The position numbers and the translations under genes are program-made. A stretch of 64,000 nt of DNA from Paragordius varius (taxonomy: Eukaryota; Animalia; Nematomorpha). Location of the stretch: positions 14,136,001 through 14,200,000 of the forward strand of contig OZ176051.1 of assembly GCA_964247055.1 (NCBI GenBank), written 5' to 3'. The notes beneath the pieces are model-generated. The model was not told where the DNA came from. It made no database searches and saw nothing but the letters and a program-made list of their open reading frames with translations. This document shows, piece after piece, positions 4,371-57,655 of the stretch. Each line of letters begins with the position of its first letter. Within the stretch, counting starts at the first letter, position 1.

Positions 4371-5055
4371 ATACCATTTGCACCTCAAGAGTGTCCTTGA
4401 ACACTTCAAGGTGGTCCTTGAACATTTCAAGTTGGTCCTTGAACACTTCAAGTTGGTCCTTAAATTTATAAATTTTGATTTGACCATAATTTTTGCATTT
4501 ATTTTTTAATTTTATTATTTATTAACCTAATTTTCTTTATTTATTATATATTTGTTCATTTTAAAATAAAAAACTTTATTGAAAAACCACTTTTTTGTTT
4601 CAAACTATTTTTTTTAATTGAACAAAATTATTGACTTTTAAATATTTTTAATGAAAAATTTTTAATTAATAACTCAGAAAAATATATTTCATTTCGTGTT
4701 AAAACTTATAAAAATCCCAAAATAATTTAAGAAATTAATAAAGATATACGGTTTCTCAAATATTAAATCTTGATATCGATTTAAAATTTGTGTTAAATAA
4801 TAGAAAATAGCTTGAAACAATAAAATAGATGAATTATTTACGATTTGATTGCTAAAAATTAAAAACAAAACAAAAAAGTAAAGGACCAACTTGAAGTGTT
4901 CAAGGACCAAATTGAAATGTTCAAAGACCAACTTGAACTGTTCAAGGACCAACTTATATTGTTCAAGGACCAACTTGAATTGTTCAAGGACCAACTTGAA
5001 ATGTTCAAGGACCAACTTGAAGTGTTCAAGGACACTCTTGAAGTGCAATTGGTAT
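4371..5055. mobile_element. Foldback element with subterminal 21-bp tandem repeats (FB-21), copy 1
   Basis: TIR atacca(t/a)ttgcac(c/t)tcaagagtgtccttgaac. About 4 units of the 21-mer ttcaaggaccaacttgaaatg (inverted) at left and about 8 at right. Flanks ataaaat/ataaatt may be a 7-bp TSD. Confidence 0.85.
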
Positions 5056-5569
5056 ATAAATTTGAGATTGCTCATATATGTATATACCATGACTTCTTAT
5101 AGGTATTACGGATTTAACTACGAGAACACATCAGCGAATTGTAAAATCCTGTACCACAAAAGGTAATTAGTATTGTAGCGTATTGTCACGGGTGATAACA
5201 AATGGGCAAATTTTGTAAATCAACAGAAAAATATATTTTAAGCACGTTCAAACTTCGGCAAAAAGACCATGCTCTATATCTGATAGGGCCAGAGCCATAG
5301 TCTGCATTATAAACTAGATAGATATAGCTTATTAACCATACTAATTTACAATAATATACCTAACAAGGCATTTGTTTATGCATATAAATACTAATATCAA
5401 ACCAACCTCCGATGTGCGTCTTCAAGCTCTACTCTTCGTTAAGGGTGGGTAGGATATGCTTTGACAGTAGGTGGTCGACGATCTTCCAATGTCACACCCT
5501 TTACTTGTTTAAGATTAATATTCCAATTGATAGATATCCGCTTACAAATAGATCATATATACTTATATA

Positions 5570-7959: not shown

Positions 7960-9090
7960 CCAGATATGTTCGGGTAGATGTTGAATAATAGTGGTGAAAA
8001 GATGCACCCTTAACGGGCGCCCCTATTTTTAGGAAACCAATCAGAGGTACCGTGTGCTGTTTGAATACATGCTTGTATTGCTGTATAAAGATTTAATTAT
8101 TTGAATGGACCAGGTGTGTGTTGGGCCAATTTTTTCCAAGGCTTCCCATAGTGTGTTATGAGTAAGCTGTTCAAAGGCTTATTAATCAATAAAACAGAAA
8201 TAAAATGGTTTGTTGTGTTCAATATATTTTTTCATGATAAATCTTGCAGATATAGTCACTGCAGCATCTTCCCTTCCGAAACCAGCTTGATTTTGTGAGA
8301 TGTTATTCTCTTGGGTTAATAATCTATAATATAATATTTTTAATAATATTTTTGAGGCTTGCGATATAAGCGCTATTGTTTGGTAGTGGCCGCATATTTT
8401 AGGTTTGCCTTTTTTGTGAATCGGTATAAGTAGAGATTTAGACCAATTGTTTTGCCAGATGGCGGATTGAAAAAAATTTGATAAGCGATTGTAAGTGTTT
8501 TTATTGGAATGTAGTTTTTCTACAGGGATGTCGTCATATCCCAAAACTTTATTGCGAAGGGATTAGATTGTATTGCGGACCTTACTTTCTAGGATGAATG
8601 GTTTATCTATAGGGATGTTTCGGGGAGAATGAAAACGTTTGAGTCACTGTGGAGATCTGTGGAATATTGTTTCCATCTGTTAATTATATTATGTTTTTCA
8701 GTAATATCTATACTATTGGAATCAAGTATAGGGCCTTTATAAATATATTTATTTGTTGCAATAGTTTGTTTGACTGAGGTGAAAATGTTTATACCCTTTT
8801 ATTTTTATTTTCAATTCGTTTATATCAATTTTTTTTGGCTAGCAAAATCTTTATTTAATTTGTTATAAAGCTCCTTTTGATTGAGATTGTTTTTTGGGTA
8901 TACGTCTTTTTTTGGCAATATGGGCAGCTGATGAAAGATAAGTCATCTTTTTATTTGGTTTCTCAATTAGACGCTTTTGTATAATAGTGTCAATTTTAAT
9001 TTTTATATTCCAGCAGTCATTGTTCAATTCGTTTATAGATTCCAGTGATGCAAATCTGTTAGTTAGCTCAATTATAAAGGGTTCAGGCAT
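7960..9090 (-). mobile_element. RTE-type non-LTR retrotransposon fragment (linker + RT N-half)
   Basis: IELTNRFASL; WSKSLLIPIHKKG..YQTIALISQASKILLKI..QAGF..FCFID; KAFE..LWEAL; GCIFSPLLFNIY across frameshifts. Confidence 0.9.
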
Positions 9091-14939: not shown

Positions 14940-15465
14940 CTCTCATCATACCAAAGTTAAAACACACCAGGGAGTGACAGATGCTATTGAAATAAACCAA
15001 GGCGTCTATCAGGGGTCAGCAATCAGTCCGTTAGTATTTATAACATGCATGGACGAAATTTTAAAAAAAGTGAGGCAACATGGTGGCTGGTATTTTCTTT
15101 ATGCAGACGACCGAATAGTGCTGTCAGACGAGTAGCGTGAATTGAAAGAATTGGTGGTTAAATGGATTGATAAGTTACGACGATGCGTTTAAAATTTATA
15201 AACAGAAAACGGAACTTATAAATTTCTGTGGGAAAAAACGAGAAATGGAATTAGGAGAAGTGTGGGTATTAAAAGGTCAGGAATGCAAATATTTAGGATC
15301 TATTTTAGCAGCAGATGGTTCTTTAGCGCATGATATAAATTTAAGACTTCGTAATAGTAGGGCAAATTATAAAAAGATCTCAAATGTTTTGTGCGAAAAT
15401 ATTGAACTTAAAGTCAAGGGTAAGATTTTCAGTGCTGTTGTACAGCTTACAATGATTTACAACTA
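14940..15465 (+). mobile_element. RTE LINE fragment (same family as 36096-38647)
   Basis: Nucleotide-level match to the RT region 37700-38230 (GVYQGS..SPL, LYADD, CKYLGSILAADGSL); stops and frameshifts. Confidence 0.92.
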
Positions 15466-15867
15466 ATATATTATTCTAGTCATTTAAGCGCATTTATTTT
15501 CGATCATAATTCTGAAGCTTTTAGCTATCGAATTATATATGAATTATAAAGAAGGCTTTTTTACGTACTATATATTACTTGGCTCATTAAGGTAATATTG
15601 ATATTTACGTGAAAAAATGTAAAATTTCGGTAGCCAGACGCGCGTTATACAATTTTTGTATTATTATTTCACTCACATTACACCCAATGCAAATAAATAT
15701 TATAGAAAATATTAACAATACATTTTATCTTTATTGTTTAAGGCTATCCTCGTTAAATTTTTTCCCAGAATTATATATTGCGTAGTATATGACTTCATTA
15801 ATATTCAAAAAATTACTTATATAAAAAATATCAGCCATTTATATAATTTATTTTTCTAAGAGCATCT

Positions 15868-18800
15868 ATGTTATCACGCTACTTTATCCTCATATTCTTA
15901 GGATTAGAAATCCATGCAATAAGTATAATCATTACATTATAATTTTAAATTTCATCTTTTATAATTTAATCAGATTGTCAATCTTCTGCGAATGAAACCT
16001 GTTATGAAGCTATAAAAAATACGTTTGGATTAAACAATCCATATGCTGAAAAAAATCGAATTGCATTTTCCACAACGTTGCCGATCCCCAGGAAATATAT
16101 TAAAGTCTCCGAACTTTTGGGTATATAATACTTCTTTATTATATTTAATATGTTTCGTAAAGTACCAAAATTTTGGAATCCATGCATAATATTTAAGCCG
16201 ATCTATTTTAGTGTTAAGAATATGAGAAAAGTTTTAAACTTTGTTAAATTTGTGGTTAGTTTAAATTATTGTACTAATTCTATTGACATGCCATATGTAG
16301 AAATTTTTTACATCTTTTTTCATTTAGATGTGGTAATTTTAAAATATAATCCTATAAAAACTCTTGAACTTTAACACACAGTAGCGAGAGCTATTATACA
16401 TTTTGGTATCTAAATTCGATAAAAATTTACCGTTTTTATCATTACATTTTTGAATATTGTTGTTTGACATAAATATGTAATTATTAATAAAATATTCATA
16501 CCAAAAAATACCGAAATGGACAATAATATGTCCAATTAGTGTGTTAGCGGTCTTGCTAACAAAAAGAATTAAAGTTGTTATAATGGGAAATTTTTTTAAT
16601 AGCCTTATTTTTATATATATATAAATATATTTATTTAAAAATATACTGACAATGATAAATGAGTTATTTTTTTCGAATAGATAAACGTCCATTAACCAAA
16701 AAAAGCCATAGGTTGGACAAATATCATGACAAATGTTTTAATATAACTAACGATGATATGAGCAAGGATGCTTTTGCCGATTGTACTAAAAATCAAACCG
16801 GTAGAGATGAAAAAGATATGTTGATCGCCATAAATAATACTGATAATAATACTTTATTGACGAAAAGGGAAAATGTATACATAGACCAACTTCGTAATTT
16901 TTATGAATCATGTACTCAATACCACAACGCTTTTGACAATGGTACATATACATATGACAAATCTGGTCATCTTTCGCGGTCCAATGTATCAAAGTGGCTT
17001 AGGAACTATATTGTATCGTTATATGGTCCCCTCATAGCAGAGAAAAGTCTAAAAAAAATTATTTCAAACTCAAGCTACCCAATTACGATGGATAATATAA
17101 CAAAAGGTTTTTACCTCTATGGTTTGAATTCGAAATTAATAATAATACTGTTTGTGTTATGATTTATTACAGGAGGATGGGCCTCAACAAAAATTGCCAA
17201 AAATTAAATTTTGAATAAAGTGCGTTTTTAAATAAATTTTTTTTGATGTCAAGATCTTGCAAAAATTTAAATTATGGTGCTATGGGCTATGAAGATATTT
17301 TAATAAAATCCTATGCTGAGTATAGCGGCTTCTAAAAATTCGTAAAAGTGACCTAATTTTTAATTCCTCCCCTTTTGTGGCACAGTTTTATAATTCATTA
17401 CAAAATTATTTAGTTAAAGAGTTTTAAAGAAAATATTTAATAATTGTGTTTTTTCAATATCGATTTTACTAACTTTGTCAGATAAATGGGTGTGTATAAC
17501 AGAACTGTTTAAAACAATGTTTATTATAAAAAACATATTTTTGAATGTCTTTAGAAAGATATGCTAGCAATTATGAATTACAGAGCCAAGATTATGCTAA
17601 CTTCAACAACCTTATCGTGAAAAATCCCTTTTTCCATGATATCCGAATCGATTACTCTGGTGCCCTAGATTTTGCTAGTTCTCTCAATATCTCACTCAAT
17701 CAACTCAATGTAACAAAAAAATGTTTAAAAATTGAAACGAATTCCCAAGACTTAGTCGCACGTAAGCTGTATATACAATATCGCAGCCTACTGTCAAACA
17801 CGGAAGAAGCCATTAAAATGGATATAAAAGAGTTAAAGGAATCCTATTTACTTCTCTGGGGTGATGATTTGCGGAAAACACAGATGGATATAATTGAAGG
17901 ATATTTTTGGCAAATAGAGAATATACATCGCAAACTAATTCAACTTATTTCTCAGTATAACGCCAAAGATGTGAAGGTTATATCAACATAAATAATATAA
18001 TAATTAGTGATACAGCACACTTAGATGTATTAGCTAAAACTATTTATGTGCAAATATTAATCTTTTGTATATTTATAAAATTTTAAAGTGTATTTAACTT
18101 GACATCAATATAATAATTTATTGCAAATACAACCGCCAAATAACTTGAAAATTGAGAATCTTATTATAATTTTTAAAGGTGATACCATTATCTCAATTTT
18201 TAATTAGAGTAAAATCAATCAAGATTGAATTACCGATCAATTTTATTATCCATATATATAGAGCTTGCATTTCTGGCGCCGGGTGACATCATGAGGGCCC
18301 CCCTCCATTTAACCCCTTGCATTTAAAAAAAATTATTACCGTGAGCGGGAAATGTGACCCGTCATAAATAGAAATACGTGAAAAAAATGAACATTCATCC
18401 CTCCCCTTTGAAAACGACGGCCTGCTTAGTAAATGTATCAGTAATAAAAATGTAATATTAGTTCGCGAAAAGTTTGATTTAGTTAAATATAGATGTTGTG
18501 TAATAGCAGTAGTCAAACTGCATTCGAAAGCGTGGCCCGACTAAAAAATTCTTTGAAAAATGGCTTGCCTCCGAAAAATAGTGGCAATCTTTGGGTATTA
18601 ACAACATCAAAAAATATCACAAAAATTAAATATAAATTTTCATGAAACTGCCTCCCTTGACATAAATATAGCATATTATATATTTAATCCACATTTATTT
18701 CTTTATCGTATTATTATATTTTATTATTATATGGTCCTCTATTGTATGGATATTGTCCAAAATATCGAAGTGCCGTCGTTACATAGAGGTGTTGTTAAAT

Positions 18801-20934
18801 TTTAATTATCTAAAAAGATTGCTGCCCCGTTGTTGGGCAGAGATGTTGTTTAATTATTAGTATCTAAAGGTGTGTTATTGGATTACAATTATCTGAAAAT
18901 ATTGGGCCGTCGTTTTTGGGTAGTAAAGTGGAATCGGTATTATGTGATTTTTAGTTTGTGCAAATATGATTACCTTTCTCTCAATTGCGGTATAATAAAT
19001 TTCAATTTTTCCTTTTTTAATTTTGAGAACCAATAATAGGTTTTCCTGATAATACTAATTTGATGCTTATTTTTCTTGTTTGAATTATCATCCTATCTTA
19101 CCCTTCGAAATTATAGCAAAAACGATTAATTGGAATAAAACTCAAAAATATTTGATGTCATAATAAAAAAACTGAAATTTAACCGAAACCGTTTTAGGGT
19201 CCGGATCAATTTTTTTCTGATTTAGGTCCCTGTTCGATTTTTTTAATCAAAAATCCTGATCTTTTTTTTTGAAGCAGCAGATAAGTAGACGTTTTAATGG
19301 CCATGAAAACATACAATATAATTGTTCCAGTTCAAACGTAGGTCTATTTCACCTAGCAATATTGATTAATAAAATATTTTCGATGGTCCTATGTTAAAAA
19401 ACTTTAAGTGGCATTAAAAATACTTGAAATAGGTATCATAATAAAAATATAATCATAATTTGATACCTCTTTAATGAATAACAATAATGAAATAAAAATA
19501 TTTTAAATTCAAGAGCAGGGTATAATGTGTGTGGATATCCCATGTCCGAAATTAGGAAAGAAAATTAAATATTTTTGAAATTCGATCTTATAATATAAAT
19601 TTAATAAATTTTAACATAATGGGTGGCACATTGATCAAGCAATATATATAATTTTGAAAGAAAATTAACATAAAATTAATTGTTATTCTTATATCTGACA
19701 CTTTTAATTTAAAGCAAATATTATAAGGTAGGGTACATGATGATATGAACAGGTTGATGTTAAGAAAGGTAGGCGCTTGAACAATTATATAAAAGGATAT
19801 GACACAATATTTTTTTTCAAATTAAATTAAAATTTTTAAAATCCCCCTCCCCCAACTATGGCTACACTGCGTGTACAATTTAAATGTTGTTGTAATTATT
19901 TAATAAGGCGAACTCGCCAGAGATTATTACTTTGAGAGTGTTAAAATATATTAATAAAATAAAAATTTGGTAATTTAAAAATATATTTCTAAATTTGATA
20001 TATGTCACCTTTTATTCGCTCCTCTATGATGAATATAACATTTGCACGTCAATCTAGAGTGTTCTTGAACACTTCAAGCTGATCCTTGAACATTTCAAGT
20101 TGGTCCTTGAATATTTCAAGTTGGTACTTGAAAACTTCAAGTTCTTTGACTTTTTTTAAATTTCATAAATCAAATCGTAATTCATTAATCTATTTTATCG
20201 TTTTAGACCTATTATTATTTAACATAATATTAAATAATTATCTTTAATCATTCAGAAACCGTATATCATTATTAATTAAAAATTTTTTGTATTAATAAGT
20301 TTTTAACACATAATTAAGAAATATATAAGTTTTCTGGGTTATTATTTACAATTTTTTATTGAAATCATTTAAAAGTTAATAGTTTTGTTAAATTGGAAAC
20401 AAGTGGGAATAAAAAATTTTATTTTTAAATTAATAGATAGATAATAAATATAGAAAATTAGGTTAAAAAATAATAAACTAAAAAAATACATGCAAAAATT
20501 ATGGTTAACCCATAATTTAAAAATTTTAAGGACCAACTTGAAGTGTTCACGGACCAACTTGATGTGTTCAAGGACCAACTCGAAGTATATGTATATATAT
20601 ATAAAAGAACTGTTAACATTCATTCATTATATTGATTTACGTTCCCAAAAAATATAAACTTTGATGAATTCATACATATTTAAAATCCTGTTTAGCACAT
20701 ATTTAAATTATTTTTTATCTTTTACAGACTGTTAATACCACATTGGAGGAGTTGAAGACCCGTTATAAAAGCGTATGCATTAGAAATTTATTATTTTAGT
20801 TTTACATATATATGTAATCTTATAATGTAATTTTTATATATCTGTATGAATGATATCCATTTTACCATAAATTTTAGCTTCTGATTCATTAAACATAAAA
20901 CCCATAAACTGGATCCAATATTTTATTAGTTTCA

Positions 20935-20975
<41 letters not shown>

Positions 20976-23900
20976 GAAAAGGTTTTTGCTGCATCGATTT
21001 GTTAGCAAGAATAGATAGATTAATATATATTGTAAAATTTCGACTTCATGTTAACCCTTTTTGTATGAACTATAGAGTTTAAATTAAAATTGAAATACAT
21101 ACTGGAACATCTTTCTTGGTTATTTGCATAGTGCGACACTTAGATTATTAATTTACAAATACATAAGAACACAACAATTGATTAAAAGAAATATTATCTA
21201 ATTTCGTAAGACATGTGTTGTAATATGTAGCAAATGGCACAAAAAATGGTTAAATGATAAAATTATAGTGGTAATGTCAAAAATATTATAAATATATAGA
21301 TTTATGATCCGAGATATTGTATTCCGCGGCCGCACTAAAGATATAATTTAATACTTTAACACCTCAGCACTTTTAATATTGAAAAGCTTAGATTTTAAAA
21401 AACCAGATAATAATAAATGTTTTTTATTCTTTTTTCACCTCAAGACCGAAAAAATATTAACTTATTATCGATATTTGGATTGTTTTTTTACATAATAACT
21501 AGATGCATCCTCTATTGTATTTAATAGAATTCGTGCTTGTGTTATCAAAATGCGATTTTTTCATACTGGTTATAGTTAAAAAAAAATAAAAAAAATATCT
21601 TTAAACTTTTACATATCAAAAAATATACGATTAATCACATTTTTGGCGCGTATTGTTTTATATATTGAATAGATTTTAGGCATCAATTTTTTGTTAGTCG
21701 TAGTTTTAAATAGTTATCTTTGCTGTATATCCTTCATTTCTCTCAAACTTAAAGATGTTTTTATTACATATAATCTAGGTAAACCTGTATGATATTTTAA
21801 TTGAACGCCTTGACATTTTAAATATAAGTCTAACTGCATATACCACAGTAGTAATATACCTTCCTGACTTTCACCGAAATTATGATGAGTTTCTCTACAG
21901 ATTTATCAAACCATCCAATAATGAAACACACTACACCAAGTAATTTTGTTATTAAGTATTAAACATTATTCGTTTATAGAAGTCCTGGATATAAACCCCA
22001 TAAGCCTAAATTTTTATTAATTTAATACTGTGAAATAATATCATATGTATTTTTATTTAAATGACTCCACGATACCAGAGAAATTCATAAAATTGACTTA
22101 CGACATGAATGTAATGCGATAATGATGCATAAAGTATCCTACGTTTCCATTTTATTACTTTCTCAGATACCAGGGGAAAAAATTGGCCAATTATTAATAT
22201 AACATAATATTATAGGACTCAATTATCATTCTCACACAATAGTCAAACATATATGTTCACCCATTTAGGTGAGATGACCAACAGGCTCTTAAAAAATAAT
22301 CAAGATCACTTATTTTTATGAGGTCATTAGAAAACTTTACTATTTGATCAAAATACAAAGATATAATTTTGATTTAAAAGGCCTGGGTTGTTAACTGCCT
22401 TCTGTAAAATTTATCAATCATTTCAATAATTAATTATATTATTATCCCATATTGCCCGTAAAAGTATTGATAAACATGTACCGATAATTAGAAAAGATAC
22501 TTAAATAAGTTTTAGTTCAGAATGTTTCAAATTTGGTTTATATAAAGGCAATTTTCAATATCAGTTAATCGTTATCTTTGTATAGATTTAATGACATTCA
22601 TATAAGAAAGAGCCGATCACACAAATGTGTGAATTCAAAAGGAGCATTAAAGCGCAGACTTAAATATATGGCTATATAATTTTTATCCATTTCTTTATCT
22701 CACATTATTTTTACATTTCATATAAATTATCCGCTTAGAAAGCTTTCCTTTTTAGGATAAAACTGTATGATTTTTTAAAGGATTTCGATTTGAAATACCA
22801 TAATTTATATTGCTCCTAGTAAGGCTTAATAAATAAATGATTTTTAAGGCAGATTCATTATATATAATTACTAATATTTAGCTATTATTTTATACATTGT
22901 ATATAAACCGCATTGTAAAATTTATTTTTTAAATTGAATGCTCTAGAGCGTATTATGATTATGTAAAAACAATATTGGTGGCCACCAATTTGGCTTACCT
23001 ATATCCTGAATGGGCCGACATTCAAGTCACGCTTAACAAAAATTATCCATTTTTGAACGTAACCGACTCTCGTTTAAAATGTATGGATATTATGAGCCTA
23101 TTTAAAACAAATTTAAATCTTGTCATCAACAGTGATTTAGATGTACATACATTTTTGCAGGTAATATTTAAAAATTTGGAGCCCAAACTTATTAATTTTA
23201 ATATATATAGATAGACATTAACGGTATATTTCTTTAATTGCTAACTGATAAGAGAAAGTTTCATTAATGCAGAAGATCGGATAATTGTGACGAATAATAT
23301 TAATATTTTGGTGGATATGTATATTTTTTGAGCATAAATATCTGCAACTGTGTTAAACAGGCATAAGATTATCGGTATAACATGAACGACAAGATAAATA
23401 AACTTAGTTGCTTCTATTATATTTAGGTGATAACCACTAATCTAGACGCTTGCAATAAAATATAGATAGAGGCATATCCACTCCACTTACATATATATCT
23501 GATAAAGTTTTAGCCATTTTGACCTCTATATAATAGAAAAAATTTAAAAAATTGACTCAGTGAAATTTGTTTGGGACTTTTTTGTCTTATGAGGAATGAA
23601 TCACTCAATTTTTTAACTAGTGGAAGTTGAGATACTTTATATAAATATATAATAAATTCTTATTACTGATTATATTTAGGTACAAAAAATCAAACATGAT
23701 TTATCAAACACATTAACGCAAAACTTACAAATTTTTAATCCGGGAAGATTTTCTGATGTTGTAAGAACGATAATCCAACATAATATTTTAATGATTATAT
23801 TGAAATTATATTCTTGATATAACTTAGGTCGTTAAAACAACGGAATGGACCTCTATGAACCCCATACAAGTTTTTTGCTATTTATTAACACATTAAAATT

Positions 23901-26900
23901 TAGATCAGGGGTGTCCAGCACAAATGGCTTCGCGGGCCGTATTTTTTGGACCCAAAAAAGATGGCGGGCCGCATTCGAGATAAATATGGCAGACTAAGAC
24001 TGTTAAATGTAAACACAATATAATATTTATTTGCCAATTAGGTAGAATTAATCAGAAAAATTGTTTAAAAATCAACAATTTTACCAAGATTTTGTAAGCA
24101 TACTTTTGCAGATTATGGATTCCCAAGTTTTTCGCGGGCCAAACATAAGATTGGGTGGACCGCATGCAGCCCGCGCTTCGCATGTTGACACCCCTAATTT
24201 AGACTAATATACTTTTTAAATCTAACCTTAAAAAAGATTGGGTATGGTAATTTTTTAGTTAAAAATAATTATGTTTTGGCCTTTTTCTTTATTTAAAATA
24301 GTGGTCCCAACAGACTTTTATTCACGCCACACCAAAATAAAAACTTGCGCACCCCCTTTTACCTCGTCATAAAAACGATAAAAATGAAAAATCTATTATA
24401 TAAATTCATAATTATAAGATCTTCAAATATATTTTCCATACGGGGACAAATTTAGATAATTTGTTTCCAGTTTTGTTTTGTTAATGAACTAGTAACCTTA
24501 TAATTTAAATTAAAGCTCCTCATATTTCTACGCCTTCCCTTTGCGAACCACTTATTTAAAGGATTTGTTGGTCATACCCCCAAAGAACCTATTATTAAAA
24601 TATGGAACATTATACGATATTAGTTATAACTATGGTATGAAACTACGAATTATACCATTTCGATCAAAAGATGGTTTAAACATCCATAATATAATATTTT
24701 TTAATGATTTATATTTTTTTTTCAAGTTTTTTAGCGATTTTAGAAAAACAAAAATCGATTATTTTCTGATAACAATTTACCGCAATTTTAAATGTATATT
24801 TATTAATTTAAAATAATGCCCTGCTTAAACCATATGTACAATTTTAATGAATCCTAATATCATAAACACTATTTGAATTATATGATTAAAATTCTTAAGT
24901 TTAATACGTAGGTAAAATCAGTACAAATGCAATTAAATAAATTTGGCGCTTTAAAATGAGTTATTAGTTTTTCGCTATAATTTTCATTTTTTTGTTTAGG
25001 TTTCATATGGCTCCGAAATTATTGATTTTATACCTAATCTGTTTAAAATGCAATTTTTTGAACGCTTCCTTGATTACATCGGGTATGAGTATATATTTTT
25101 ATAAAAAAATATTTCACATGTTTGTAATTCAATGAAAATTAAAATTTAACAAAATGGAAAACCAAAAAACATACATTTTAAAAAAGTTTAAAGACAATTA
25201 GCGAAAACAACCATACTTCAAACCTTGATTTATCGCATATAAACTATTTTATCCATTGAATAATATAATTGTTTTTTAAAATTTATGATATCTATTCTTT
25301 ATTTTGCAACAAAAATGATGGTAGATTAATATAATCAAGGTTAAAAAAGTATGGCTATTTTTAAAAAATATTTGTATTTTGGTTTTCACAAGTTAATTTT
25401 TACTCTAATACTATCTATACTCTTGATTAATATATTTACGTATAATTTCTAAATATTATTTTACAGTTATGACCAACCTAACGGAATCACTGGTTTACGA
25501 ATTACTAATAGCACATTCATGTAAGTACAACCTAAAATATTACTATTATTTACACCAATGATACACGCCGGGCTCCAAGTATATATTATGCCACGCGAAT
25601 TCGAAAAAAAATCACCGCACAAATTCACATGATTTAAAAAATATCCTAAAATTTAACCTTTATATCATCTATTTAAATATTATTTTTAAACTAATAAAAA
25701 CTATATCTTTGTCATAGACAAAATTAATTATCAGGTAAAAGGTTATTTTAAGGCCGAACTACAGGGTACCCTTAAATTGGATTTTGTACAGTACTATGAG
25801 TTCTTTAAGGTTATAATTATCATTAATTTATATGGGAAAACAATGTCAAGGTTTTCTGTTAAAAAAGTGTGTCTGTCAATTTTAGGTTTTGTATTTATAT
25901 AAGGGATTCCAAAACACGCTCGCAGGCACATACGGCCTTGGGTAATACTTAAAAATCCTCCATATGAAAAAAATGTATGATAATATCTTATTTTGAAGCA
26001 AACAATAAAAATATCACCAGTTTTCCCTTTAGGGCATTATATTTTATGTTATAAAATTTTAAAATGTGTGTCTTTTTAAATTTGATAAGCACCGTTAATT
26101 GTTAGTTATGGATTTCGATTTTTATCCGTAAAAATATTATGTTTGTTGTCCGATTAGAGTGGATTTTTTTTAAAAAAATCAATCATTACTTTATTTGGAT
26201 ATAAAATATGTGGCCTTTCATTGATAAACTTTTAAGTGGATAGATTGTTTTTGATTCACACTTGAATTTTTGTTCGAGATGACATTTTAGGGTAGTTTTC
26301 TACCATAAAAAGTATTGAAAAAATCCTTTTGTTTAAAATTTAATGATAAAACTCCCTTCTCCGACTGCTTGAATTTTAACAATTTTGGAACTTCTATAGT
26401 CCCGAATTCGGATAGCCTCAACACAGTGGCAGACAGCTGATATTAAGTAAAAATAAAAATTTACTCAAAATTATTTATTTGTTTTTCAACAATAATATAC
26501 ATTTATGTCGGTTGTGTTCACGATTTATAAAAAATTAAGAAATGGAGGTAAAAAAGTTTGAAATGAAGATTCTTTAGAATTTTAAATTTTTTTAAAAAAC
26601 AAATAATATCATGAGATTAAACTTAATAAAGTATATATTTTAATTGCGCCAAATGCTAAAAATGTTTTTTAAATTTTTAAATTTTAATGGTGAGGGCGTT
26701 TAAAAGCCCAGAAAATCATGTAAAAATTACATGACTTTATAAAGTATATCATATATGCCCAAGGCAACCGAATAATTGGAAATATTTGATCGAATAAATA
26801 TTCATGATTATTGTTACTTTATTTCTAAGTTCATTTGAAATTTAATAACAGTTAATGCCCTGGTAATATAATATTATGCGGCTCCCATATATTTTTGAGT

Positions 26901-28964
26901 GTAAAATTTGGCCTGAAAAGTCATTGTAGCCCTGATTTATATTTTTAGTGTATGTATGTCTATTTTAATTTATAGAAACTATTTCGAAAGTGCCCTTAAT
27001 ATGATCTTTGATGGAGGTATGCTCGCTATTAACAACTAATTTATTATATGTTGTTTAATTTTATGTATGTAGCCCCTTATCCGCTACGATGTGGTTCATT
27101 TGCTGATGAAATATTTGGATATAATATTGTGAAACAAGCCTTACATCTGACCGCATTGGTAATTTATTATACAAATGTCAAAAAATAAACTATCCATAAG
27201 TTGCTGTATTTAAATTTATTACCATTGTTTTATATATTGAATAAAACAAATTATTTTCACCTTAAAACCCCTCTAATCTTTTACGAAATAATTATAACAT
27301 AACTAGATTATATAATAATCATGCGATTTTACTCGTTTAAGGATATTTTAAAATTCTATAATGAATCAAATGAAAATTTAAATTCAAATAAGCTTTTTTG
27401 TCAATATAAATAATATAGCTTATGTTTTATCATATGTCCAAAAGCCACAGGCTAATCAGAGTAATAATAGAAATTACGGACAAAAAGTAAAATATAAAAC
27501 AAATATTTATTAAAAGACAACCAAACTTTTTAAAATTTTAATGTTTCCTTATAAGCTACTTAGTAATCAAACTTTGTAATTTTAAATGATTTATATTGAT
27601 ATAAATCTAGATTTAAAAAGTATAGGAAGTCTTTTAAAAAGATTATTTGTCTTTATATTTTTACATTTTGTCCGTATGATTTCAGTTTTTACTGTATCAA
27701 ATTTTGTAAAGATTATTTTTTGCATAAAAAAATTCTATTAGTAGTAAAATACCCAATACCAAAAAAAGTTGCCAATTAATAGATAAGTTATAAAACTTAA
27801 TTAGAATTTTAGAAATAATTTCGCACTGTATTATTTATTTTTTTTAACAATAACATAATAATATAAACTAATTTTATAAAAGAATTGAAATCCTATTTAA
27901 TATAAAACTATTTTATAATAGTATATCTTAAACAAATGATTTTTAATCCTATATTGTTTAAACCTAATATAATTAGAGACATATATATTTATTGGTTAGC
28001 GAATTTCTTATATTATAATGTGTTTACATAATATAACCTTCTGAAATATATATATTATGATGGGAAAATGTATCATAATTATCATAAGGCTTATGGTTTT
28101 GGGCCTTACTAGTGATATAACAGAGTTATATAAACTTATGTGGTAAGTGCTTCATATCAAAAAATGGTAAAATTTGGGTACATTTTTTGAAATAAAATAT
28201 TTTGATGAAAGTTAAATGCTTTATTCCAAAATATATCACTAAATTTAAACTCTCTATAAAAAGCATAACAATATTTTTAGAATATTTAATTTTTAGATGT
28301 GGACCCCAAATTTTTTCGCTCTTTAAAATGGGCTTGCTTTTTTAATAAACACAAAATGTCGGGATTGCAAATGTATGAGTTTGACATCAAATTTTTTTTA
28401 AAAAATTGCATACTCTATAAAAAAATTTAATTTTTAGCAAAATTTTATTGAAGTGTATCATCCAATTTTTAGTGATGGAAACGGTAAAAATTTAAGATAT
28501 TAAAAAACACTTAATATAATTTGATGATAACATTTCTATCACCTCTAATATTCGTTCCTCTTTAATATTTATGTCAAATATTTGTTGTTTTTATAAATCA
28601 CAAAATTTAAATGTAAATGAACCTTTAAATTAAAATTCTAAAGCGATAGAAATGTTCAGCATATCAAATATGGAAAATGTTTTTATAATATCTAAAAGCG
28701 TTTTTATACCATTTCAATCATTCCTAAAAATAGTATGAAGTATGTACTTCGACAAAATTTGCTATTAATAAAATTTTGTAAAGTATGCATTTTTTAAAAA
28801 TAATTTTATGTCAAATTTGGCATATTTTATCGTGCGATACGGCATTTTTTAGTTTATTTTAAAAGTAGCACATTTTGGAAGAGCGAAAAATTTGGGACTT
28901 TCGTAGCCCACATCTAAAAATTGAAATTTTTAAAAATATTTGTTTGCTTTTTATAGGTAGGTTA

Positions 28965-29007
<43 letters not shown>

Positions 29008-29177
29008 TGATATATTTTCGAATGAAGCATTTAGCTTTCACAAAATAAATTAATACAAAAAATGTACTCAAATTTTGTCATTTCCATGGAACACTTACCA
29101 CAAAAGTTAATTTGTTTTATCACTCGTAAGGGCCAAAACCAAAAGCACCATGATAATCCTAATACATTTTTATATCA

Positions 29178-29220
<43 letters not shown>

Positions 29221-30727
29221 GTTATTTTTTATACCCTCCGATTTTGGACACAGTTTTATACAAGGGTTTCAACCCTCGCTAAAAATTTGAAAAACCTATT
29301 AAAAAATTTTTAATACTATTTTTCACAGTGTAAATTAAAACCCAATTTTCTCGAATTTTAAATGATCTTTTAATTATATAAAAATTAAGTACGTTTCATA
29401 TCGGAAACTAATGCAAAAATTTATTTTGCAGATGACGTTTTAGAACATTATTTTAGTAAAGTTTTAATTATAGTATTATGGCTAAAACTACGCAAAATTA
29501 TTTATAATAACAAAATATATTGACATGCTGTATTTAAGCGTAAACAATTATAAAATAAAGCGTGTTAAATGCAAAAATATACAACAGGGGTGTCCACACA
29601 AATAGCTTCGCGGATCACATAAGCAAAATATATGGGCCATATAATTGAATGTACTGAAACTTTATTTTAACAATTTTGACTACATTAAAATTTGTTTAAG
29701 AAGATTAATTTTACAACTTCGAAAAATTTTATAAAAAATTTCTGGACTGTAGAAATATTTCGAAGGCCGCATTCGGCCTATGGTTACCGGCGTGTTTGAC
29801 ACCCCTAGCCTGCAATTTTGTTGAAAATAGTAATTTTTTGGAACTAGCTATTTACTTTAATTTATTGTCAATAACTTCGGTACTTAAATAAATATTGAAC
29901 TTCTTTGAATCCAACATTTTTAGTTATAACGGTTAGATTTAAATTCAAATATTGTAAATAGTAAGGAGGCGGTGTGTATAATTAGTCATTTTACATCATT
30001 ACTTGTATTTTTTAGCATTTGTATGATGTCCCTCACGAAGCCCTCAACTCCTCTAATGTTTCTAAAAATTATGTTAATTATCCAACCATTATTATGAAAA
30101 AGGATATGTTAAATGTTTTTAAGGTAAGTATACTTGGATATATAAGTAATTTTAACTAATCTTATTTTTCAATATTATTTATTATTTTATGTAAAATAGA
30201 AAATAGGGATATTATTAGCTCATTCAATAAGATAGTAAAAATGTCATAGTTAAAAATCGAGGTTTGAAAAGATCATTATCTAACAAATATTTGTCTAATT
30301 TTTTTCTGCCTAATTTATATTTTACCAGAATTACCGCATATAATACAAATCATCATTAGGCCTAAAATATACTATATTTTGTGTATTATTCTAAAAAATG
30401 TGAAATTTTTGACAATATTTTACTTATTAGTAATTTTATTTATATCACTAATTCCATATTTGTCGGACATTTATATAATTTTTAGACGTACTCATCTGGG
30501 TCGAACATAGAAAAGGAATTTCAGGACAGGTATGTTTTATGGGATATTCCATCATATATTTTAATTTTATTTATGTAAATATTTAAAATTTAAATGCAGT
30601 TATATTGATATATATATAAAAAAATAGAATATTTGAATTGTTATCAACAACCAAGGAAGCGGCTGAAGAATTTAATTGCAAACAGGGATATGAAAATCTT
30701 GCAAATTGCACACTTATTTACCAATAA
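15868..30727 (+). CDS. Divergent, probably secreted neprilysin (peptidase M13)-like protein lacking HExxH; multi-exon, possibly pseudogenised
   Basis: Hand-built exons: 15868-15922 (signal peptide MLSRYFILIFLGLEIHA), 16681-17106 (QLRNFYESC), 17555-17976 (PFFHDIRID..ISLNQ), 20728-20772 (TLEELKTRY), ~22756-22818, ~22947-23160, 23680-23760, 23828-23869, 25000-25082 (VSYG..FFERFL), 25467-25520, 25718/25753-25809, 25886-25941, ~26090-26235, 26400-26446, 26976-27016, 27073-27158 (GSFAD..G), 30016-30123, 30486-30529, 30628-30727 (RIFELLSTTKEAAEEFNCKQGYENLANCTLIYQ*, cf. M13 RVxGxLxNxxEFxxAFxCxxGSxMNPxxKCxVW). GT-AG boundaries; AATAAA near 30755. Exons around 22.8 kb and 25.5-26.3 kb are ambiguous. 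Confidence 0.72.
20035..20595. mobile_element. FB-21 foldback element, copy 2 (inverted relative to copy 1), intronic
   Basis: Same 21-bp subrepeats at both ends; the AT-rich core is the reverse complement of 4470-4870. Confidence 0.8.
20938..20972. repeat. (TA)n microsatellite
   Basis: Direct TA run. Confidence 0.95.
23906..24196. mobile_element. hAT MITE, intronic
   Basis: TIR CAGGGGTGTCCA..TTGACACCCCT(A); 8-bp TSD atttagat/atttagac. Confidence 0.88.
27470..27680. repeat. Small inverted-repeat element (putative MITE)
   Basis: tacggacaaaaagtaaaatataaaacaaata vs tatttgtctttatatttttacattttgtccgta; a related half copy lies near 58320. Confidence 0.5.
28055..29180. mobile_element. FB-TA foldback element, complete copy, intronic
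   Basis: Long imperfect inverted arms (aaaatgtatcataattatcat..tggttttgggccttactagtgat vs atcactcgtaagggccaaaacc..atgataatcctaatacattttt); flanked by TA runs and containing (TA)n at 28968-29004. Confidence 0.8.
29181..29217. repeat. (TA)n microsatellite
   Basis: Direct TA run abutting the FB-TA right TIR. Confidence 0.95.
29585..29807. mobile_element. hAT MITE, intronic
   Basis: CAGGGGTGTCCA..TTTGACACCCCT(A) termini; TSD not matching. Confidence 0.78.
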
Positions 30728-36095: not shown

Positions 36096-38647
36096 GAGGT
36101 TAGACGTGCTGACAATAGAATTATAAGTGTCGACCTATTGTTAAATAAGAGGGTTTTTACTATTTTTAGCGTCTATGCCCCCCAGATAGGAAATTAAACC
36201 GGAGAAAGATAAATTTTATGATTTGTTAGAAGCAGAAATGACTTCATTAACGAAAGACAGAGAAATTACATATTGTGGTGATTTCAATGGGCACGTGGGA
36301 CAAAATAGGAGAGGTTTTGAGCCTTGGCACGGCGGAAAAGGTTACGGGATTATAAATGAGGGGCTAGTTTAAGATTTGCCCAATCTTATAAATTTGCTAT
36401 AACAAATACTTTTTTTACTAAAAGGGATAGCCACTTAATTACCTACGAAAGAAATAAGAAGTCACAAATCGATTATATTCTAGTACCACGAAAGCCTTTA
36501 AAGTTTGTTTTGGACTGCAAAGTTACCTAACCTGCAGATTAGCACACAACACAATTTAATTATGTTAAAAATATATGACAGATATACCAATAAATGCCAA
36601 AAAGCCTAAGCTTATAGCGCCGAAGGTAATTAAATGGGATTCCCTAGGAAACAGTAAGAAAGATTTGTAGGAACGGTAGACATACTAGACAGGAACAGTG
36701 ATCCAGATATTTGGTCTCAGGTGGCAAAAAAATAAGAGAGGCGGGAGTTAAGATGTGCGGAACGAAAGGTGGCAGAAATCAGTTTATAGAGAAGCATGGC
36801 TGAAAGACGAAAAAATAATTCTGAAATCGCGAGAAAAAATAAAAGCTTTTTAAATGTGGAGGTTTACCCACCAAGCAGAAGACAAGGAAAAATATAAAAG
36901 GATTAATAAGGAACTTAAAAGGCTTGTAAGATTGGCCAAAAAAAAGACGGCATCATTATATGAAGAGTTAAGTAAGCAAAAACAAAGTTTTTAAAATTGC
37001 TCGACAAAGACACAGAAGAAAGCTGGACCCCCCTTACGCGACAGCTATTAAAGATAAAAACGGCAAATTACTCGTTGAGGAAGCGAAAATATTGAAAAGG
37101 TGGAAAGAATATTTCCAGGACCTTGAATTGGGCGTCAGTGAAACAAGTTTACCCGAAATACCAGATTATATATCTGCGCATATTGAAAGTATAACAAAAG
37201 AAGAAGTCCAGGTTAGAGGAGATGACAATAAATAAGGCTGCAGTTGGAAAATAATGTCAGAGAAAGGTATTGAATTTTTGACGGATATTTTTAATAATGT
37301 AGTTACTACAGGTATGATACCAACCGAATGGAAGGAGAGTTTCACTGTTCCCATTTTCAAGGGTAAGGGAGATATTAATGATTGTAATAATTACAGAGGG
37401 ATAAGATTGATGTCGCAAACAATGAAGTTATTTGAGAAAGTACTAGAGAAAAGAATAAGAAAAATGGTTAGTATAGAGGGTAATCAATTTGGTTTTATTC
37501 CAGGAAAATCCACCATTGATTCGATTCACGCAGTGAGAAGGCTAATCGAGAAACATATAGAAATGAAAAAGGAGTTGCATGGTTTTTGTATTGATATTGA
37601 AAAGGCATTTGACAGAATACCTCGGAGCACAATATGGTGGAGCTTAAGACTGAAAAAGGTCCCTGAAAGTTACATAAAGATTTTAAAAAGCATGGACGAA
37701 TCACACCAAACCAAAATTAAAACACACCAGGGAATATCAGGTCCTATTAAAATAAATGAAGGGGTCTATCAGGGGTCTACAATCAGCCCGTTACTATTTA
37801 TAATATGCATGGACGAAATTTCAAAAGAAGTAGGGCAACATGATGGCTGGTATTGTCTTTATGCAGACGACCTAATAGTGCTGTCCGACGAGTTGCATGA
37901 ATTAAAAGAATTGTTTGGTAAATGGATTGATGTGTTACGACGATGCGGATTAAAAATTAATAAAAAGAAAACGGAACTGATAAATTTTGGCGGGAAAAAA
38001 CAAGGAATGGAATTAGTAGAAGGGTGGGTATTAAAAGGTCAGGAGGAATGCAAATATTTAGGAGCGATATTAGCAGCAGATGGTTCTTTAACACTTGATA
38101 TTAATTTAAGAATTCCAAATAGTTGGGCAAATTATAAAAAGATCTCAAGTGTTTTGTGCCACAAAAACATTGACCTAAAAGTAAAGGGTAAGATTTACAG
38201 TGCTGTTGTACAACCAACAATGATGTACAACTCACAGACATGGGCAAGAAAGAAATCAGAAGAGAGGCACTTTGAGGTTACTGAAATGAGAATGCTTAGA
38301 TTGATGTCCGGTCTAACGAGGAATGACAAGTTGAAGAATGTCTACATAAGAGGAAGTGCGGAAATCAAACCGGTAACGCAAAAGATGATGGTAAATCGTT
38401 TAAGATGGTTCGGACATGTTGAAAGAAGAGATATTAATTATATTGGTAAAAAGATTGATGATTATATTGTGAAAGGCAAGAGGGGAAAAGGGCGCTCTAA
38501 AACGCAATGGATAGATACAGTTAAGAGGGACATGGCAAAACTGAACCTAAAACGCGAAGACGCCTTAGACAGGTTTCTATGGCGAAATAGTTTACGGATA
38601 TAACCGCTCGAAAGAGTGATATCATACAATGTAATTATTATTATAAT
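36096..38647 (+). mobile_element. RTE-clade LINE (APE endonuclease degraded, RT open)
   Basis: SVYAPQ and GDFNGHVG (APE; IDYILV further on) in broken frames, followed by the RT ORF and a short ATT-repeat tail. Confidence 0.95.
37254..38603 (+). CDS. RTE reverse transcriptase (449-aa open portion)
   Basis: WKESFTVPIFKGKGD..NYRGIRLMS, QFGF, DIEKAFD, GVYQGSTISPLLF, LYADD, KYLG. Confidence 0.95.
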   Translation: MSEKGIEFLTDIFNNVVTTGMIPTEWKESFTVPIFKGKGDINDCNNYRGIRLMSQTMKLFEKVLEKRIRKMVSIEGNQFGFIPGKSTIDSIHAVRRLIEKHIEMKKELHGFCIDIEKAFDRIPRSTIWWSLRLKKVPESYIKILKSMDESHQTKIKTHQGISGPIKINEGVYQGSTISPLLFIICMDEISKEVGQHDGWYCLYADDLIVLSDELHELKELFGKWIDVLRRCGLKINKKKTELINFGGKKQGMELVEGWVLKGQEECKYLGAILAADGSLTLDINLRIPNSWANYKKISSVLCHKNIDLKVKGKIYSAVVQPTMMYNSQTWARKKSEERHFEVTEMRMLRLMSGLTRNDKLKNVYIRGSAEIKPVTQKMMVNRLRWFGHVERRDINYIGKKIDDYIVKGKRGKGRSKTQWIDTVKRDMAKLNLKREDALDRFLWRNSLRI

Positions 38648-47129: not shown

Positions 47130-48110
47130 TATATTTTGCAAAACAGAAGTACGAGAAAGATGGAAGGAATACACCCAAAAACTCTATCAGGCTCCTCAAT
47201 CAAAAGTTTTGCAATTAAAAGAGGAAGAACGTGATACAGAAATAAAGAGAGGAGGTTGAATTAGCCTGAAAACAAATTCCTAACAACAAAGCGGAATTAG
47301 ACAATATCCCAATAGAGTTTATAATAGCTATTACTGTAGATACGTTACACAAGTTATGTCAAAAGGTGTGGGAAACATGTGAGTGGCCAAACGACTGGAT
47401 ATCATCTGTATATCTCCCAATATACAAAAAAAGTGATGTACTCTAGTGCGAAAACTATCAAAACATAGCTCTTATTAGCCACGCTAGTAAGGTCTTGCTA
47501 AAAATAATATAAAACAGGATGCACAGTATTATACAGTCAGAATTACCAAATCAAGTCAGATTTATGAAGGGAAAAAGCACAAGAGACCATATATCAAACA
47601 TGAGAAGAATAATGGAAACATCTAGAGAGTTTCAGAAAGAGCTATACATGTGTTTTATTGATTACAGACAAGCCTTCCATTCGATTAATTATGACTCCTT
47701 GTGGGGGCCATTAAAGTTATTTGGGGTATCGTTCCACTTAATAAGATTGATTAACTCTCTCTATGTAAAACAAAGAGCGATCATAAGAACATCAGCAGGT
47801 TAGCTGAAAATGTAAATGATTTAAAATTGATCGAAGAGATTCGAAAGGAAAGTTTAAGTTATGGTCTTATGCTTAACCCTAACAAAAATAAAATATTATG
47901 TGCTGGAGAAAAGCCTACAATTATTATACTAGGAGTGGAAATAGAAATAGTTAAACACTTAAGTTTTTGGGTGCAGTAATTTCATGGTCTTCAACTCCTG
48001 ACATCAGAAAGAGAATAGGATTGGGTAAAGCGATGACCAAACTAATAAAGATTTGGAAAAACAAAAGCGTAGGAGTTTAAACAAAAGAAAATTACTCTAC
48101 TGTTTCGTTC
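47130..48110 (+). mobile_element. RTE-type LINE fragment (second subfamily, internally deleted)
   Basis: WPNDWISSVYLPIYKK..NYQNIALISHASKVLLKI..FMKGKSTRDHI..YMCFIDYRQAF; then jumps to GLMLN.NK.K and IRKRIGLGK. Confidence 0.9.
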
Positions 48111-52100: not shown

Positions 52101-53562
52101 TGTTAATTTGAAGAGAAGAAAATATAAGAAACGTGAAATGATATTTATTCTCTTTTTTGTGCTTTATATACACTATTTTAGGTGTACATAATTTGCATTA
52201 TAACAGTAAAATTTCGTGTAATAATGGATATAATATTTACATAGTACCAAAAAAATATAAAGTTAATATTCAAATCTCACAGAAAATTATGATAAACAAC
52301 CAAAGTATATATTTCAAATTTGCATGTAACATCACTTCACCCTTAGGCGAAATAAAACTAGTTTGAATGATAATACATGTTTTGGGTGTGTCGACGAATA
52401 TTTGCATAAGGTACATCATAGTTTGAAAGATAACATCACGTGTTGTGTGTCGACGAATCATTTGATTTATGCCTCTGTTACATGAAAATTTGAATATATA
52501 CTTTGGTTGTATATCATAATTTACTGTGAGATTTGAATTGTATTTTTTTATATTTTTTTGGTACTATGTAAATATTATATCCTTTGTTACACGAAATATA
52601 TTGTTATGCAAATTATGTACACCTAAAAATAGTGTATATAAAGCACAAAAAAACGAATAAAGATCATTTCACGTTTCTTATATTTTCTTCTTTTCAAATT
52701 TACAGCCTCACGCCATCCTGGACCATTTCTTGTTAAACTGGTCCAGCACTGAAATATTATCGGCGCGGTGAGGAATCTGAACGGTATCCTTTTGAAACGG
52801 AAACATCCTCTTTTTTGCATTAAAATTGTAGAGGGGGTGTAGCGACTCTTTATATCGGCCTGGGGAGGTAGGCGTCTTACAGATCAATCTTACTTGTCCG
52901 CACCAATCTAACTTACTCAACCATCAAATGTTGAATGATGTGGGAGTCTTCCCCAGCCATTTGTTGATAATGATTCCAGAGTCGCTATAGATACTTAGCC
53001 CGTTCACTTTCAGTGCCCTGGCGGTTGTACATATTTTTGGTTGGGTTTTCCGCATTTGCAATTACGGTTCCAGGCGGGATATTTGCTTGGCCCATGAACA
53101 CTCCCATAACCTTTGCGCGAATGTGTCTTAGGTTTTGATTGTTGTGATCGATTAAAATTATTACCATTGCTATAATTGGTATTATCATTATATATTTAGC
53201 TGGACATGTTGGTGATATTGGCAATTGACATTGTCATGGTTGTTGCACTTTCTCTATATCCACCATCCGAGTTTGGACTCCGATGGGCTCCACTGTTATG
53301 TTAGATTAATTGTTAGATTAGTTCGGATTCGCTTAGCTACCAGATGTTAATTCGAAGAGAAGATAGTATAAAAAACGTGAAATGATATTTATTCGTTTTT
53401 TGTGCTTTATATACACTATTTTTAGGTGTACATACTTTGCATTATAACAATAAAATTTCGTGTAACAAAGGATATAATACTTACATAGTACCAATACAAT
53501 TCAAATATCACAGAAAATTATGATATACAACCAAAGTATATATTTCAAATTTGCATGTAACA
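52101..53562 (-). mobile_element. Internally deleted mini LTR retroelement (Gypsy-derived)
   Basis: 5' LTR 53345-53562, PBS TGGTAGCTAAGCG, gag/RT remnants (IDL.DAYL; KRIPFRFLTAPIIFQ), purine tract aagggtgaagtga, 3' LTR 52101-52331; exact 5-bp TSD ATAAC. Confidence 0.92.
52476..52704 (+). mobile_element. Solo LTR of the same family, inserted antisense inside the mini element
   Basis: TGTTACATG..AAATTTACA; exact 5-bp TSD GCCTC at 52471-52475 and 52705-52709. Confidence 0.92.
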
Positions 53563-56629: not shown

Positions 56630-57655
56630 AGGCTAATGATTTATGAAGCAAGAAGACCAATTCAAAAGCATATAGGAATGAACAGGGAGTTGCATGGTAA
56701 TTTCAATATTGAAAAGACGTTTGAAAATATACAACTGAGTACAATATGGTGGAGTTTAGAACGGAAAAACGTTCCTAAAAATTACATAAAAATTAAAAAA
56801 TTCTGTATGGCTTTCACCATCTTAAAGTTAAAACACACCAGTAGTGTCAGATCCATTAAAATAAACCAAGGCATCTATCAGCGGTCAGCAATCAGTTCGT
56901 TGCTATTTATATGAACGAAATTTCAAAAGAAGTAAGGCAACATGGTGGCTGGTATTCTCTTTATGCAGACGACATAATAGTGCTGTCAGACGAGTAGCAT
57001 GAATTGAAATAATTGATAAGCAAATGGATTGTTAAAAGAACTCGGAACTCATAAATTTTGGTGGAAAAAAACGAGAAAAGGAATTAAAAAGGTTACGTTT
57101 TAAAAGGTCCGGAGGAATGCAAATATATAGCCGCAAGTAAATGGTTCTTTAACGCATGATACAAATCTTAGAATTCGAAATAGTTGGGCAAATTATAAAA
57201 AGATTTAAATGTTTAGTACGATAAAAAAAATTGACCTAAAGGTCAAGGGTAAGATTTATAGTGCTATTTTACAGCCAGCAATGATGTACAACTTACACAA
57301 ATGGGCATTAAAGAAATCAGAAGAGAGGCACTTTGAAAAGAGAATGCTTAGATTAATGTGCCGTGTAACGAGGAAAGACTGGGTGAGGAATGAATACATG
57401 ATTTAGTACGGAAATCAAACCAATAACCAAAAATTGATGTAAATCGTCTTAGTGGTTTGGATCTAAGAAGAGATAACTACATTGGTAAAAAGATTGATGA
57501 TACGAGGGCGCCCTAAAAATCGATGGATAGATACGGTTAAGAGGACATGGCAAAACTGAACCTAAAAAGCGAGGACGCCATAGACAGGGTTCTACGGCGA
57601 AAGAGTTTAGGGATATGACCGCTCGAAGGACTGATGTCGTATAATGTAATTAATT
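56630..57655 (+). mobile_element. RTE LINE, 5'-truncated degraded copy (family of 36096-38647)
   Basis: STIWWSL, LYADD, KVKGKIYSA..QP.MMYN; 3' end accgctcgaag..gatgtcgtataatgtaatt matches 38600-38640. Confidence 0.92.

Follow-up and report, generated by a model that had tools for sequence, protein, structure and literature searches.

The 64,000-nucleotide stretch of Paragordius varius DNA analyzed here (C2:14136001–14200000 of the 110.6-Mb assembly, ~27% G+C; hereafter, the window) contains on its + strand, between positions ~15868 and 30727, what we hold with good confidence to be one intact gene of at least 11 exons. Its product is probably secreted and N-glycosylated and would be a very diverged descendant of the M13 (neprilysin) peptidases that has lost catalysis. 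Most likely, the protein would start with a cleavable signal peptide and be heavily N-glycosylated. Its first ~490 residues would follow the M13 N-terminal domain in order, in length and, partly, in intron positions, and its last 47 residues would correspond to the C-terminal tail of M13 proteins, both cysteines included. By analogy with what has been proposed for fly Nepl proteins, the role of such a protein would be extracellular and non-enzymatic, with binding in place of cleavage: a ligand or peptide may be held by it, or it may be a structural or protective glycoprotein.

Exon structure of the gene

The gene model is a phase-consistent chain of GT-AG exons on the + strand (Table 1) that ends with the stop codon of the terminal exon at 30727. 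A first-pass annotation of the window, made by reading the sequence, had called a hidden multi-exon gene at this place, and the call stands; of the 19 exons that it counted, 11 are supportable. Together, they comprise 552 codons without a stop. Every modelled exon has a canonical acceptor and donor, and all except exon 6 exceed their flanks in G+C content. In DNA of 27% G+C, a stop is expected approximately every 12 codons; the frames of exons 1 and 2 are open for 167 and 148 codons, respectively. The codon log-odds of both exons are among the highest of all window segments (19.9 for exon 2), and the splice between them (17106/17555) preserves the frame through a split GAA codon.

Further downstream, micro-exon 3 has a strong acceptor (a T-rich tract followed by CAG), a GTATGC donor and a G+C content of 40% versus 22% in its flanks. 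The open frames of exons 4 and 6 begin exactly at their acceptors. The phases of exon 4 connect exons 3 and 5 (split codon AAA); those of exon 6, for which there is no similarity evidence, suit exons 5 and 7. Up to exon 7, the product has ~490 residues, and the V-S-Y-G motif of this exon sits where an I-G-Y-P motif closes the M13 N-domain, presumably at about the same position (~490 residues) in neprilysin and other M13 proteins.

The weakest exon of the model is the first one. It encodes a basic and then a hydrophobic stretch with I-H-A at its end, and its donor (TAA/GTATAA) leaves one nucleotide, which completes a split AAT codon, so that the frame continues into exon 1; translation could instead start at an in-frame ATG at 16659. 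The proposal of the first-pass annotation that a signal peptide is present here instead of a type II membrane anchor is plausible, with 15868–15922 joining exon 1 in phase.

The phases between exon 7 and the penultimate exon (25083–30485) do not close unless there are more exons in this region. The candidate at 27073–27158 (40% G+C versus 24% in the flanks) is probably a real exon, and additional short exons are likely. A dynamic-programming chain returned many equally possible phase-compatible candidates for the region (for example, 25904–25941, 26400–26446, 26976–27016, 30016–30145 and 30200–30234); these have no independent support, and the method over-predicts tiny exons.

Table 1. Exons of the gene model and repeats of the gene span (window positions; a slash marks the splice junction)
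Feature	Position	Strand	Length	Phase	Remarks
First exon (putative)	15868–15922	+		0 to 1	start codon and 18-residue signal-peptide-like stretch
Exon 1	16681–17106	+	426 nt (141 codons)	1 to 1	8 NxS/T sites; Y-E-S-C motif
Exon 2	17555–17976	+	422 nt (140 codons)	1 to 0	predicted mostly helical
Micro-exon 3	20728–20772	+	45 nt	0 to 0	T-L-E-E-L...Y motif
Exon 4	21779–21939	+	161 nt	0 to 2	acceptor CTAG/, donor CAA/GTAATT
Exon 5	22947–23160	+	214 nt	2 to 0	putative counterpart of M13_N ~263–338
Exon 6	23680–23760	+	81 nt	0 to 0	acceptor TTTAG/, donor GTT/GTAAGA
Exon 7	25000–25082	+	83 nt	0 to 2	V-S-Y-G; acceptor T-rich tract and TAG/, donor CGG/GTATGA
Candidate exon	27073–27158	+	86 nt	1 to 0	G-S-F-A-D; acceptor TGTAG/, donor TTG/GTAATT
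Penultimate exon	30486–30529	+	44 nt	0 to 2	good splice scores
Terminal exon	30628–30727	+		2 to stop	F-N-C-x9-C; stop TAA at 30725–30727
Dispersed repeat	18262–19809				intron after exon 2; copies on C5, C2, C6 and C10, 69–76% identity
Repeat with inverted ends	20030–20608		~550 bp		within intron
Repeats	27458–27721, 28042–29225				within 3′ part of gene span

Relation to a multi-copy secreted family

The genome contains a family of ~13 secreted copies, located on C2, C3, C6 and C11. One of them, copy 1 (L043 and the start of L041), lies ~85 kb upstream of the gene in the window. The exon-A region was examined for 13 further loci besides copy 1, and most copies were compared around exon A only. 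Members of the family resemble the gene in the window: their first exon encodes a signal peptide (a putative one in the window), exon A has a Y-[DE]-S-C-x-x-Y motif, the acceptor of exon B matches, and the terminal cysteines are spaced identically and followed by A-N-C-T; identity in aligned stretches is roughly 30–37%.

The comparison with the window covered its 3549 segments free of stops, taken from all six frames. With a hidden Markov model (HMM) of exon A built from eight copies, the top match was exon 1 (E 0.012), followed by exon 2, in colinear order. With exon B of copy 1, the segment at 22933–23211, which contains exon 5, ranked first (E 0.018). Conversely, a search of the 110-Mb genome with exon 5 of the window retrieved exon 5 itself and two family exon-B loci on C6 and nothing else. 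The terminal exon matched the last exon of copy 1 (BLASTP E 0.044; window 30620–30724); the F-x-C-x9-C spacing is identical, and in both a T and the stop come next. From these matches, it follows that the gene in the window is a distant member of the family and that its end at 30727 is placed correctly. The weight of the link comes from rank, colinearity and the genome-wide match. The gene is the most divergent family member found so far.

Several differences set it apart. Its exon A is interrupted by an intron (17107–17554), and it contains a T-L-x-E-L micro-exon, which was searched for in the family loci examined and found in none of them. In copy 1, one last exon takes the place of the penultimate and terminal exons of the window, and the alignment is ungapped; the penultimate exon and the copy-1 exon share their starting phase (0) and the number of residues up to the [IL]-F position (15). 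The last M13 intron has evidently been lost from copy 1 but is kept by the gene in the window. Its separate terminal exon and its micro-exon are both ancestral M13 features.

Both the signal-like first exon and the signal-peptide exons of the family suggest secretion. The density of N-glycosylation sequons fits: there are 15 NxS/T sites in 552 residues, i.e., 2.7 per 100 versus 1.2 per 100 in real M13 exons. The number of copies, the in-frame stops that several of the others carry and their low mutual identity are in keeping with fast evolution of a secreted family.

The family matches also bear on where the gene ends. The donor of exon 2 (GTTATA) is weak, and read-through at this donor, at 17976, meets a stop five codons further on, at 17989–17991. 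Were this the end of the gene, its product would be a secreted protein of ~300 residues and the downstream exons would be pareidolia. We regard this as very improbable, for exon 5 and the terminal exon are independently similar to family exons in the right order and on the right strand, and exons 3–7 chain in phase. Our initial reading of the locus, an orphan two-exon gene unrelated to M13, was dropped after the family and intron-position evidence.

The locus could also be a dying or dead copy, either unexpressed or with a decayed 3′ half, in which only the 5′ exons look like coding sequence. Exons 1 and 2 are indeed the only ones that score clearly as coding by themselves, the 3′ part is rich in repeats and its exons are not fixed, and in-frame stops do occur elsewhere in the family. 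Against this, all 552 supported codons are open despite identity of less than ~35% to any paralogue (31–37% in the aligned exon-5 and terminal stretches); identity this low implies long separate evolution, in AT-rich DNA prone to stops. The splice sites are, moreover, intact over the full length of the gene, and the terminal exon retains both of its cysteines and the stop. A dead copy therefore seems to us quite unlikely, and an intact gene remains the preferred reading.

Evidence for descent from M13 peptidases

There are ~10 undoubted M13 genes in the genome, on C1, C3, C4, C5, C7 and C9, and Pfam picks them up exon by exon, including exons of 25–40 residues. Their intron positions are strictly kept among paralogues (L026–L040): the last intron is present in eight of nine genes and the intron before R-I-L-x-D-Y in six of six. 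Because of this strict sharing, intron position can be used in this genome as a marker of homology after similarity has faded.

Of the landmarks listed in the first-pass annotation, FYESC (16899), TLEEL (20740), VSYG (25000) and the C-terminal F-x-C...C (30620–30724) are present and follow one another in the order given there. The same order is found in real M13 proteins, including neprilysin and ECE-1 (K-A-x-Y-x-S-C, T-L-x-E-L, R-x-L-x-D-Y, an I-G-Y-P-like motif and the C-terminal F-x-C...C), and hhalign aligned the K-A-x-Y-x-S-C motif of the real genes to exon 1.

Three intron positions, along with the length of the N-terminal two thirds, are common to the real M13 genes and the gene in the window. 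The acceptor of the terminal exon lies one nucleotide before the codons for [VI]-x-x-x-L-S in the window and in eight of nine real M13 genes. For exon 5, the acceptor falls within the R codon of R-x-[LY]-x-[DN]-[YF], and it does so in the window, in six real M13 genes and in family copy L050. The donor of micro-exon 3 is two codons after the Y of T-L-x-E-L-x3-Y, in the same phase, in the window and in two real M13 genes (L032 and L033). A fourth site is near-conserved only: the exon 7 donor uses the same Gly codon as real ...K-I-G-Y-P...Y-x-G/ sequences but is positioned one base earlier.

The second line of evidence is transitive and passes through the family. Ten exon-group HMMs were built from M13 exons excised from the real genes of the same genome. 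When family exon B was compared by hhalign with six real M13 exons (M13_N 263–338), a local P of 5e-4 was obtained in the expected register. In an all-versus-all comparison, the best partner of family exon A was the real group covering M13_N ~50–200 (P 0.0015), and that of family exon B was the group 263–338 (P 0.006); the nine other exon groups gave P of at least 0.23, and controls with reversed sequences gave P of at least 0.08. The real-M13 exon HMMs also ranked family exons A (E 0.0018) and B (E 0.0057) first among the + strand segments of copy 1; the catalytic-domain HMMs had no match among these segments. The order of secondary structure elements in family exon A, helix-helix-helix-strand-strand-helix-helix, agrees with that in the M13 N-domain of the NEP structure, an agreement that is no test of the fold. 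With the terminal exon of a real M13 gene, that of the window gave a BLASTP E of 0.1. No similarity was detected by BLASTP between exon 4 and the real M13 exon of the corresponding region.

One may argue that the gene is a genuine member of the secreted family but that the family is not derived from M13, the coincidences of motifs and introns being due to chance or to a convergent preference for splice sites. Pfam, PDB and HMM searches indeed found no M13 match for the exons of the window, Pfam and PDB profiles found no M13 in family exons A and B, and the hhalign probabilities are low (3–31%). The ease with which M13 motifs arise by chance is illustrated by the piece at 52991–53128 described below. 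We nevertheless consider independent origin unlikely. At aligned motifs, three splice sites that are independent of one another coincide exactly, in nucleotide position and in phase; out of ten M13_N regions, each family exon picks the right one, with colinearity preserved, which reversed controls do not; and M13 proteins have the same length up to the I-G-Y-P-like motif. Although no single number is strong alone, common descent with M13, as the first-pass annotation had proposed, is much the best reading of the evidence taken together.

Loss of the catalytic motifs

No H[ED]xxH sequence is present in any + frame of the 15.5–31 kb region, which extends the earlier failure to find HExxH at 25.9–27.0 kb, and the + frames from 15.8 to 30.7 kb contain neither an ENIAD-like sequence nor NA[YF][YF]. 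At the C-terminus, C-T-L-I without a W stands in place of C-x-x-W. With none of HExxH, the ENIAD glutamate (the third zinc ligand), the substrate motif NAY/FY and C-terminal CxxW present, the product cannot be a metallopeptidase, and the proposed loss of the zinc-binding motifs is borne out in the + frames. In Drosophila, these four motifs serve to tell active Nep proteins from inactive Nepl proteins, and a Nepl protein is defined by M13 descent and loss of at least one of them (PMC8223033); having lost all four, the putative M13 descendant in the window falls into the Nepl class.

The specific substitutions suggested earlier do not hold. The piece in which HExxH was thought to have become KSIIT (26158–26232) lies in homopolymer runs of T and A and has no HMM support. 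For the change of ENIAD to GSFAD, no HMM match was obtained, and the exon at 27073–27158 resembles the real ENIAD exon neither in phase nor in length or position. Between the [WY]-C position and the last intron, the gene of the window and copy 1 have 15 residues and a real M13 gene has 26; the C-domain is therefore at least partly shortened. With this stretch shortened and the catalytic domain undetectable, the view that the peptide-binding cavity has been kept finds no backing. Unlike active M13 proteins, the product also lacks the N-terminal C-x7-C/D-F-Y motif, its identity to them is too low for any HMM, and a signal peptide would replace the type II anchor.

Direct searches with the exons of the window

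Profile, database and fold searches were made exon by exon. The comparison with the Peptidase_M13_N and Peptidase_M13 profiles that had been proposed as a check gave no match for the exons of the window. None of the exons matched Peptidase_M13_N (PF05649) at E of 10 or below, and a six-frame scan of the genome with this profile retrieved 41 matches elsewhere and none in the window; the catalytic-domain profile Peptidase_M13 (PF01431) had no match among the exons or open frames of the window. When unfiltered HMMs of real M13 exons and BLASTP were applied to the 3549 window segments, only noise was obtained; the C-terminal piece reached 7.9 bits (E 0.85, rank 6) with these HMMs.

A phmmer search of PDB with four pieces and one profile found no neprilysin or ECE match; de novo TIM-barrel repeats were the only matches and were judged an artefact. 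Searching the genome for paralogues of exons 1 and 2 gave only a weak match to an unrelated low-complexity open reading frame on C1, and a word search with exon 2 gave no match. No M13 protein was found with exon 1 among 1.84 billion representative proteins. The sole match in this search, bacterial repeat protein P0001 (E 8e-6 over three repeats), was judged compositional. In the ESM Atlas, exon 1 gave noise at 0.84, and three open frames looked up by exact sequence were absent from the collection. A Foldseek search with the low-confidence model of family exon A had no match.

An L-N-Y-G-A-M-G match within intron sequence (17219–17332) was at noise level and out of order and was discarded. Outside of the gene, a chance open piece on the + strand at 52991–53128, which reads N-Y-G-S...L-A-H-E-H-S-H, outscores everything in the gene span on the M13 zinc-site HMM and serves as a negative control for motif spotting in AT-rich DNA. 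Given this better zinc-site match and the noise-level HMM scores within the span, the short landmarks taken singly are no better than chance.

Several points weigh against the interpretation of the locus as a diverged M13 gene. No direct statistic ties the exons of the window to M13, the link being transitive, via the family and the intron positions, and the E-values between family and window are each only 0.01–0.05. AlphaFold models of exon 2 alone (predicted local distance difference test score, pLDDT, of 44) and of family exon A (eight sequences, pLDDT 49.5) are too poor to assign a fold. The first exon and exons 4 and 6 are placed solely by splice signals and phase, about a quarter of the gene has no fixed exons, and the model is built on the genomic DNA of one assembly.

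Repeats and other features of the locus

A large share of the introns consists of dispersed repeats. The one that occupies the intron after exon 2 (window 18368–19827) also occurs in family copy 1, where it has the same orientation and sits in the corresponding intron, after exon A (L043:3611–4658). The exons that flank this shared repeat are barely alignable; either the repeat was inserted twice, independently, into this intron, or it changes much more slowly than its surroundings. The ~550-bp repeat with inverted ends, also found at 4375–5166 of the window, is very abundant: dozens of scored copies have 77–81% identity, and a first look yielded 7173 candidates genome-wide. Its ends match both strands, and inside it is a short tandem repeat, one frame of which reads K-D-Q-L-E-V-F. 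Within the gene, an intronic G+C-rich (36–41%) stretch at 23800–24250 (+) contains repeat-like pieces, G-P-x-x-R-L-G-G-P-H, and is absent from the scored repeats.

Retroelement debris is abundant in the window. An intact reverse-transcriptase frame of the long interspersed nuclear element (LINE) type, 449 codons long, is located at 37254–38603 (+), and decayed relatives are found at 14974–15466, 8182–8544 (−), 47519–47803 and 56636–56914; a further LINE reverse-transcriptase copy lies within the last intron region of family copy 1 (L043:8309–9685). Integrase-type frames are present at 34–35 kb of the window.

Elsewhere in the genome, a cluster of weak matches to positions 10–50 only of Peptidase_M13 was noticed at C4:6823813–6892453, plus one at C2:14776339–14776461. 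The match list contains no other M13 parts near them, and they may represent another diverged M13-derived family.

Relation to known inactive neprilysin-like proteins

Dead secreted relatives of neprilysin form a known but poorly understood class. In Drosophila, Nepl proteins such as Nepl15 (PMC8223033, PMC7822871, PMC2259306) are, as the gene in the window appears to be, M13 descendants without catalytic motifs. The inactive secreted kind accounts for 21 of the 28 fly M13 genes; 18 of these 21 have a signal peptide instead of a membrane anchor, the group arose by lineage-specific expansion, and a role in sequestering peptides has been proposed for it (PMC8223033, PMC7822871, PMC2259306). A metabolic phenotype is known for Nepl15 (PMC8223033, PMC7822871), and the scavenger or decoy role is likewise a published idea for fly Nepl (PMC8223033). 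Unlike the gene in the window, fly Nepl proteins are still recognized as Peptidase_M13 and M13_N and have a full-length C-domain with substituted residues. In the gene studied here, no profile detects either domain, the four motifs are gone and the stretch before the C-terminal tail is shortened.

We conclude that the gene is a further, unusually diverged member of the known class of secreted inactive neprilysin-like proteins; beyond the points made here, it is an ordinary paralogue. A more far-reaching view, which we put forward tentatively and hold to be rather doubtful, is that it is a surviving intermediate on the way from M13 peptidases to lineage-specific secreted glycoproteins, in which the catalytic core was discarded and the helical N-domain was rebuilt for new binding. 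If true, a peptidase scaffold that is no longer recognizable would have been turned to binding of a new kind, which might serve reproduction, for instance, or interactions with a host or prey.

A domain search alone would leave such genes uncalled in annotation. The present locus is missed by every standard profile, yet it is tied to M13 through conserved intron positions, and this tie makes it a useful bridge for tracing the origin of a fast-evolving secreted family.

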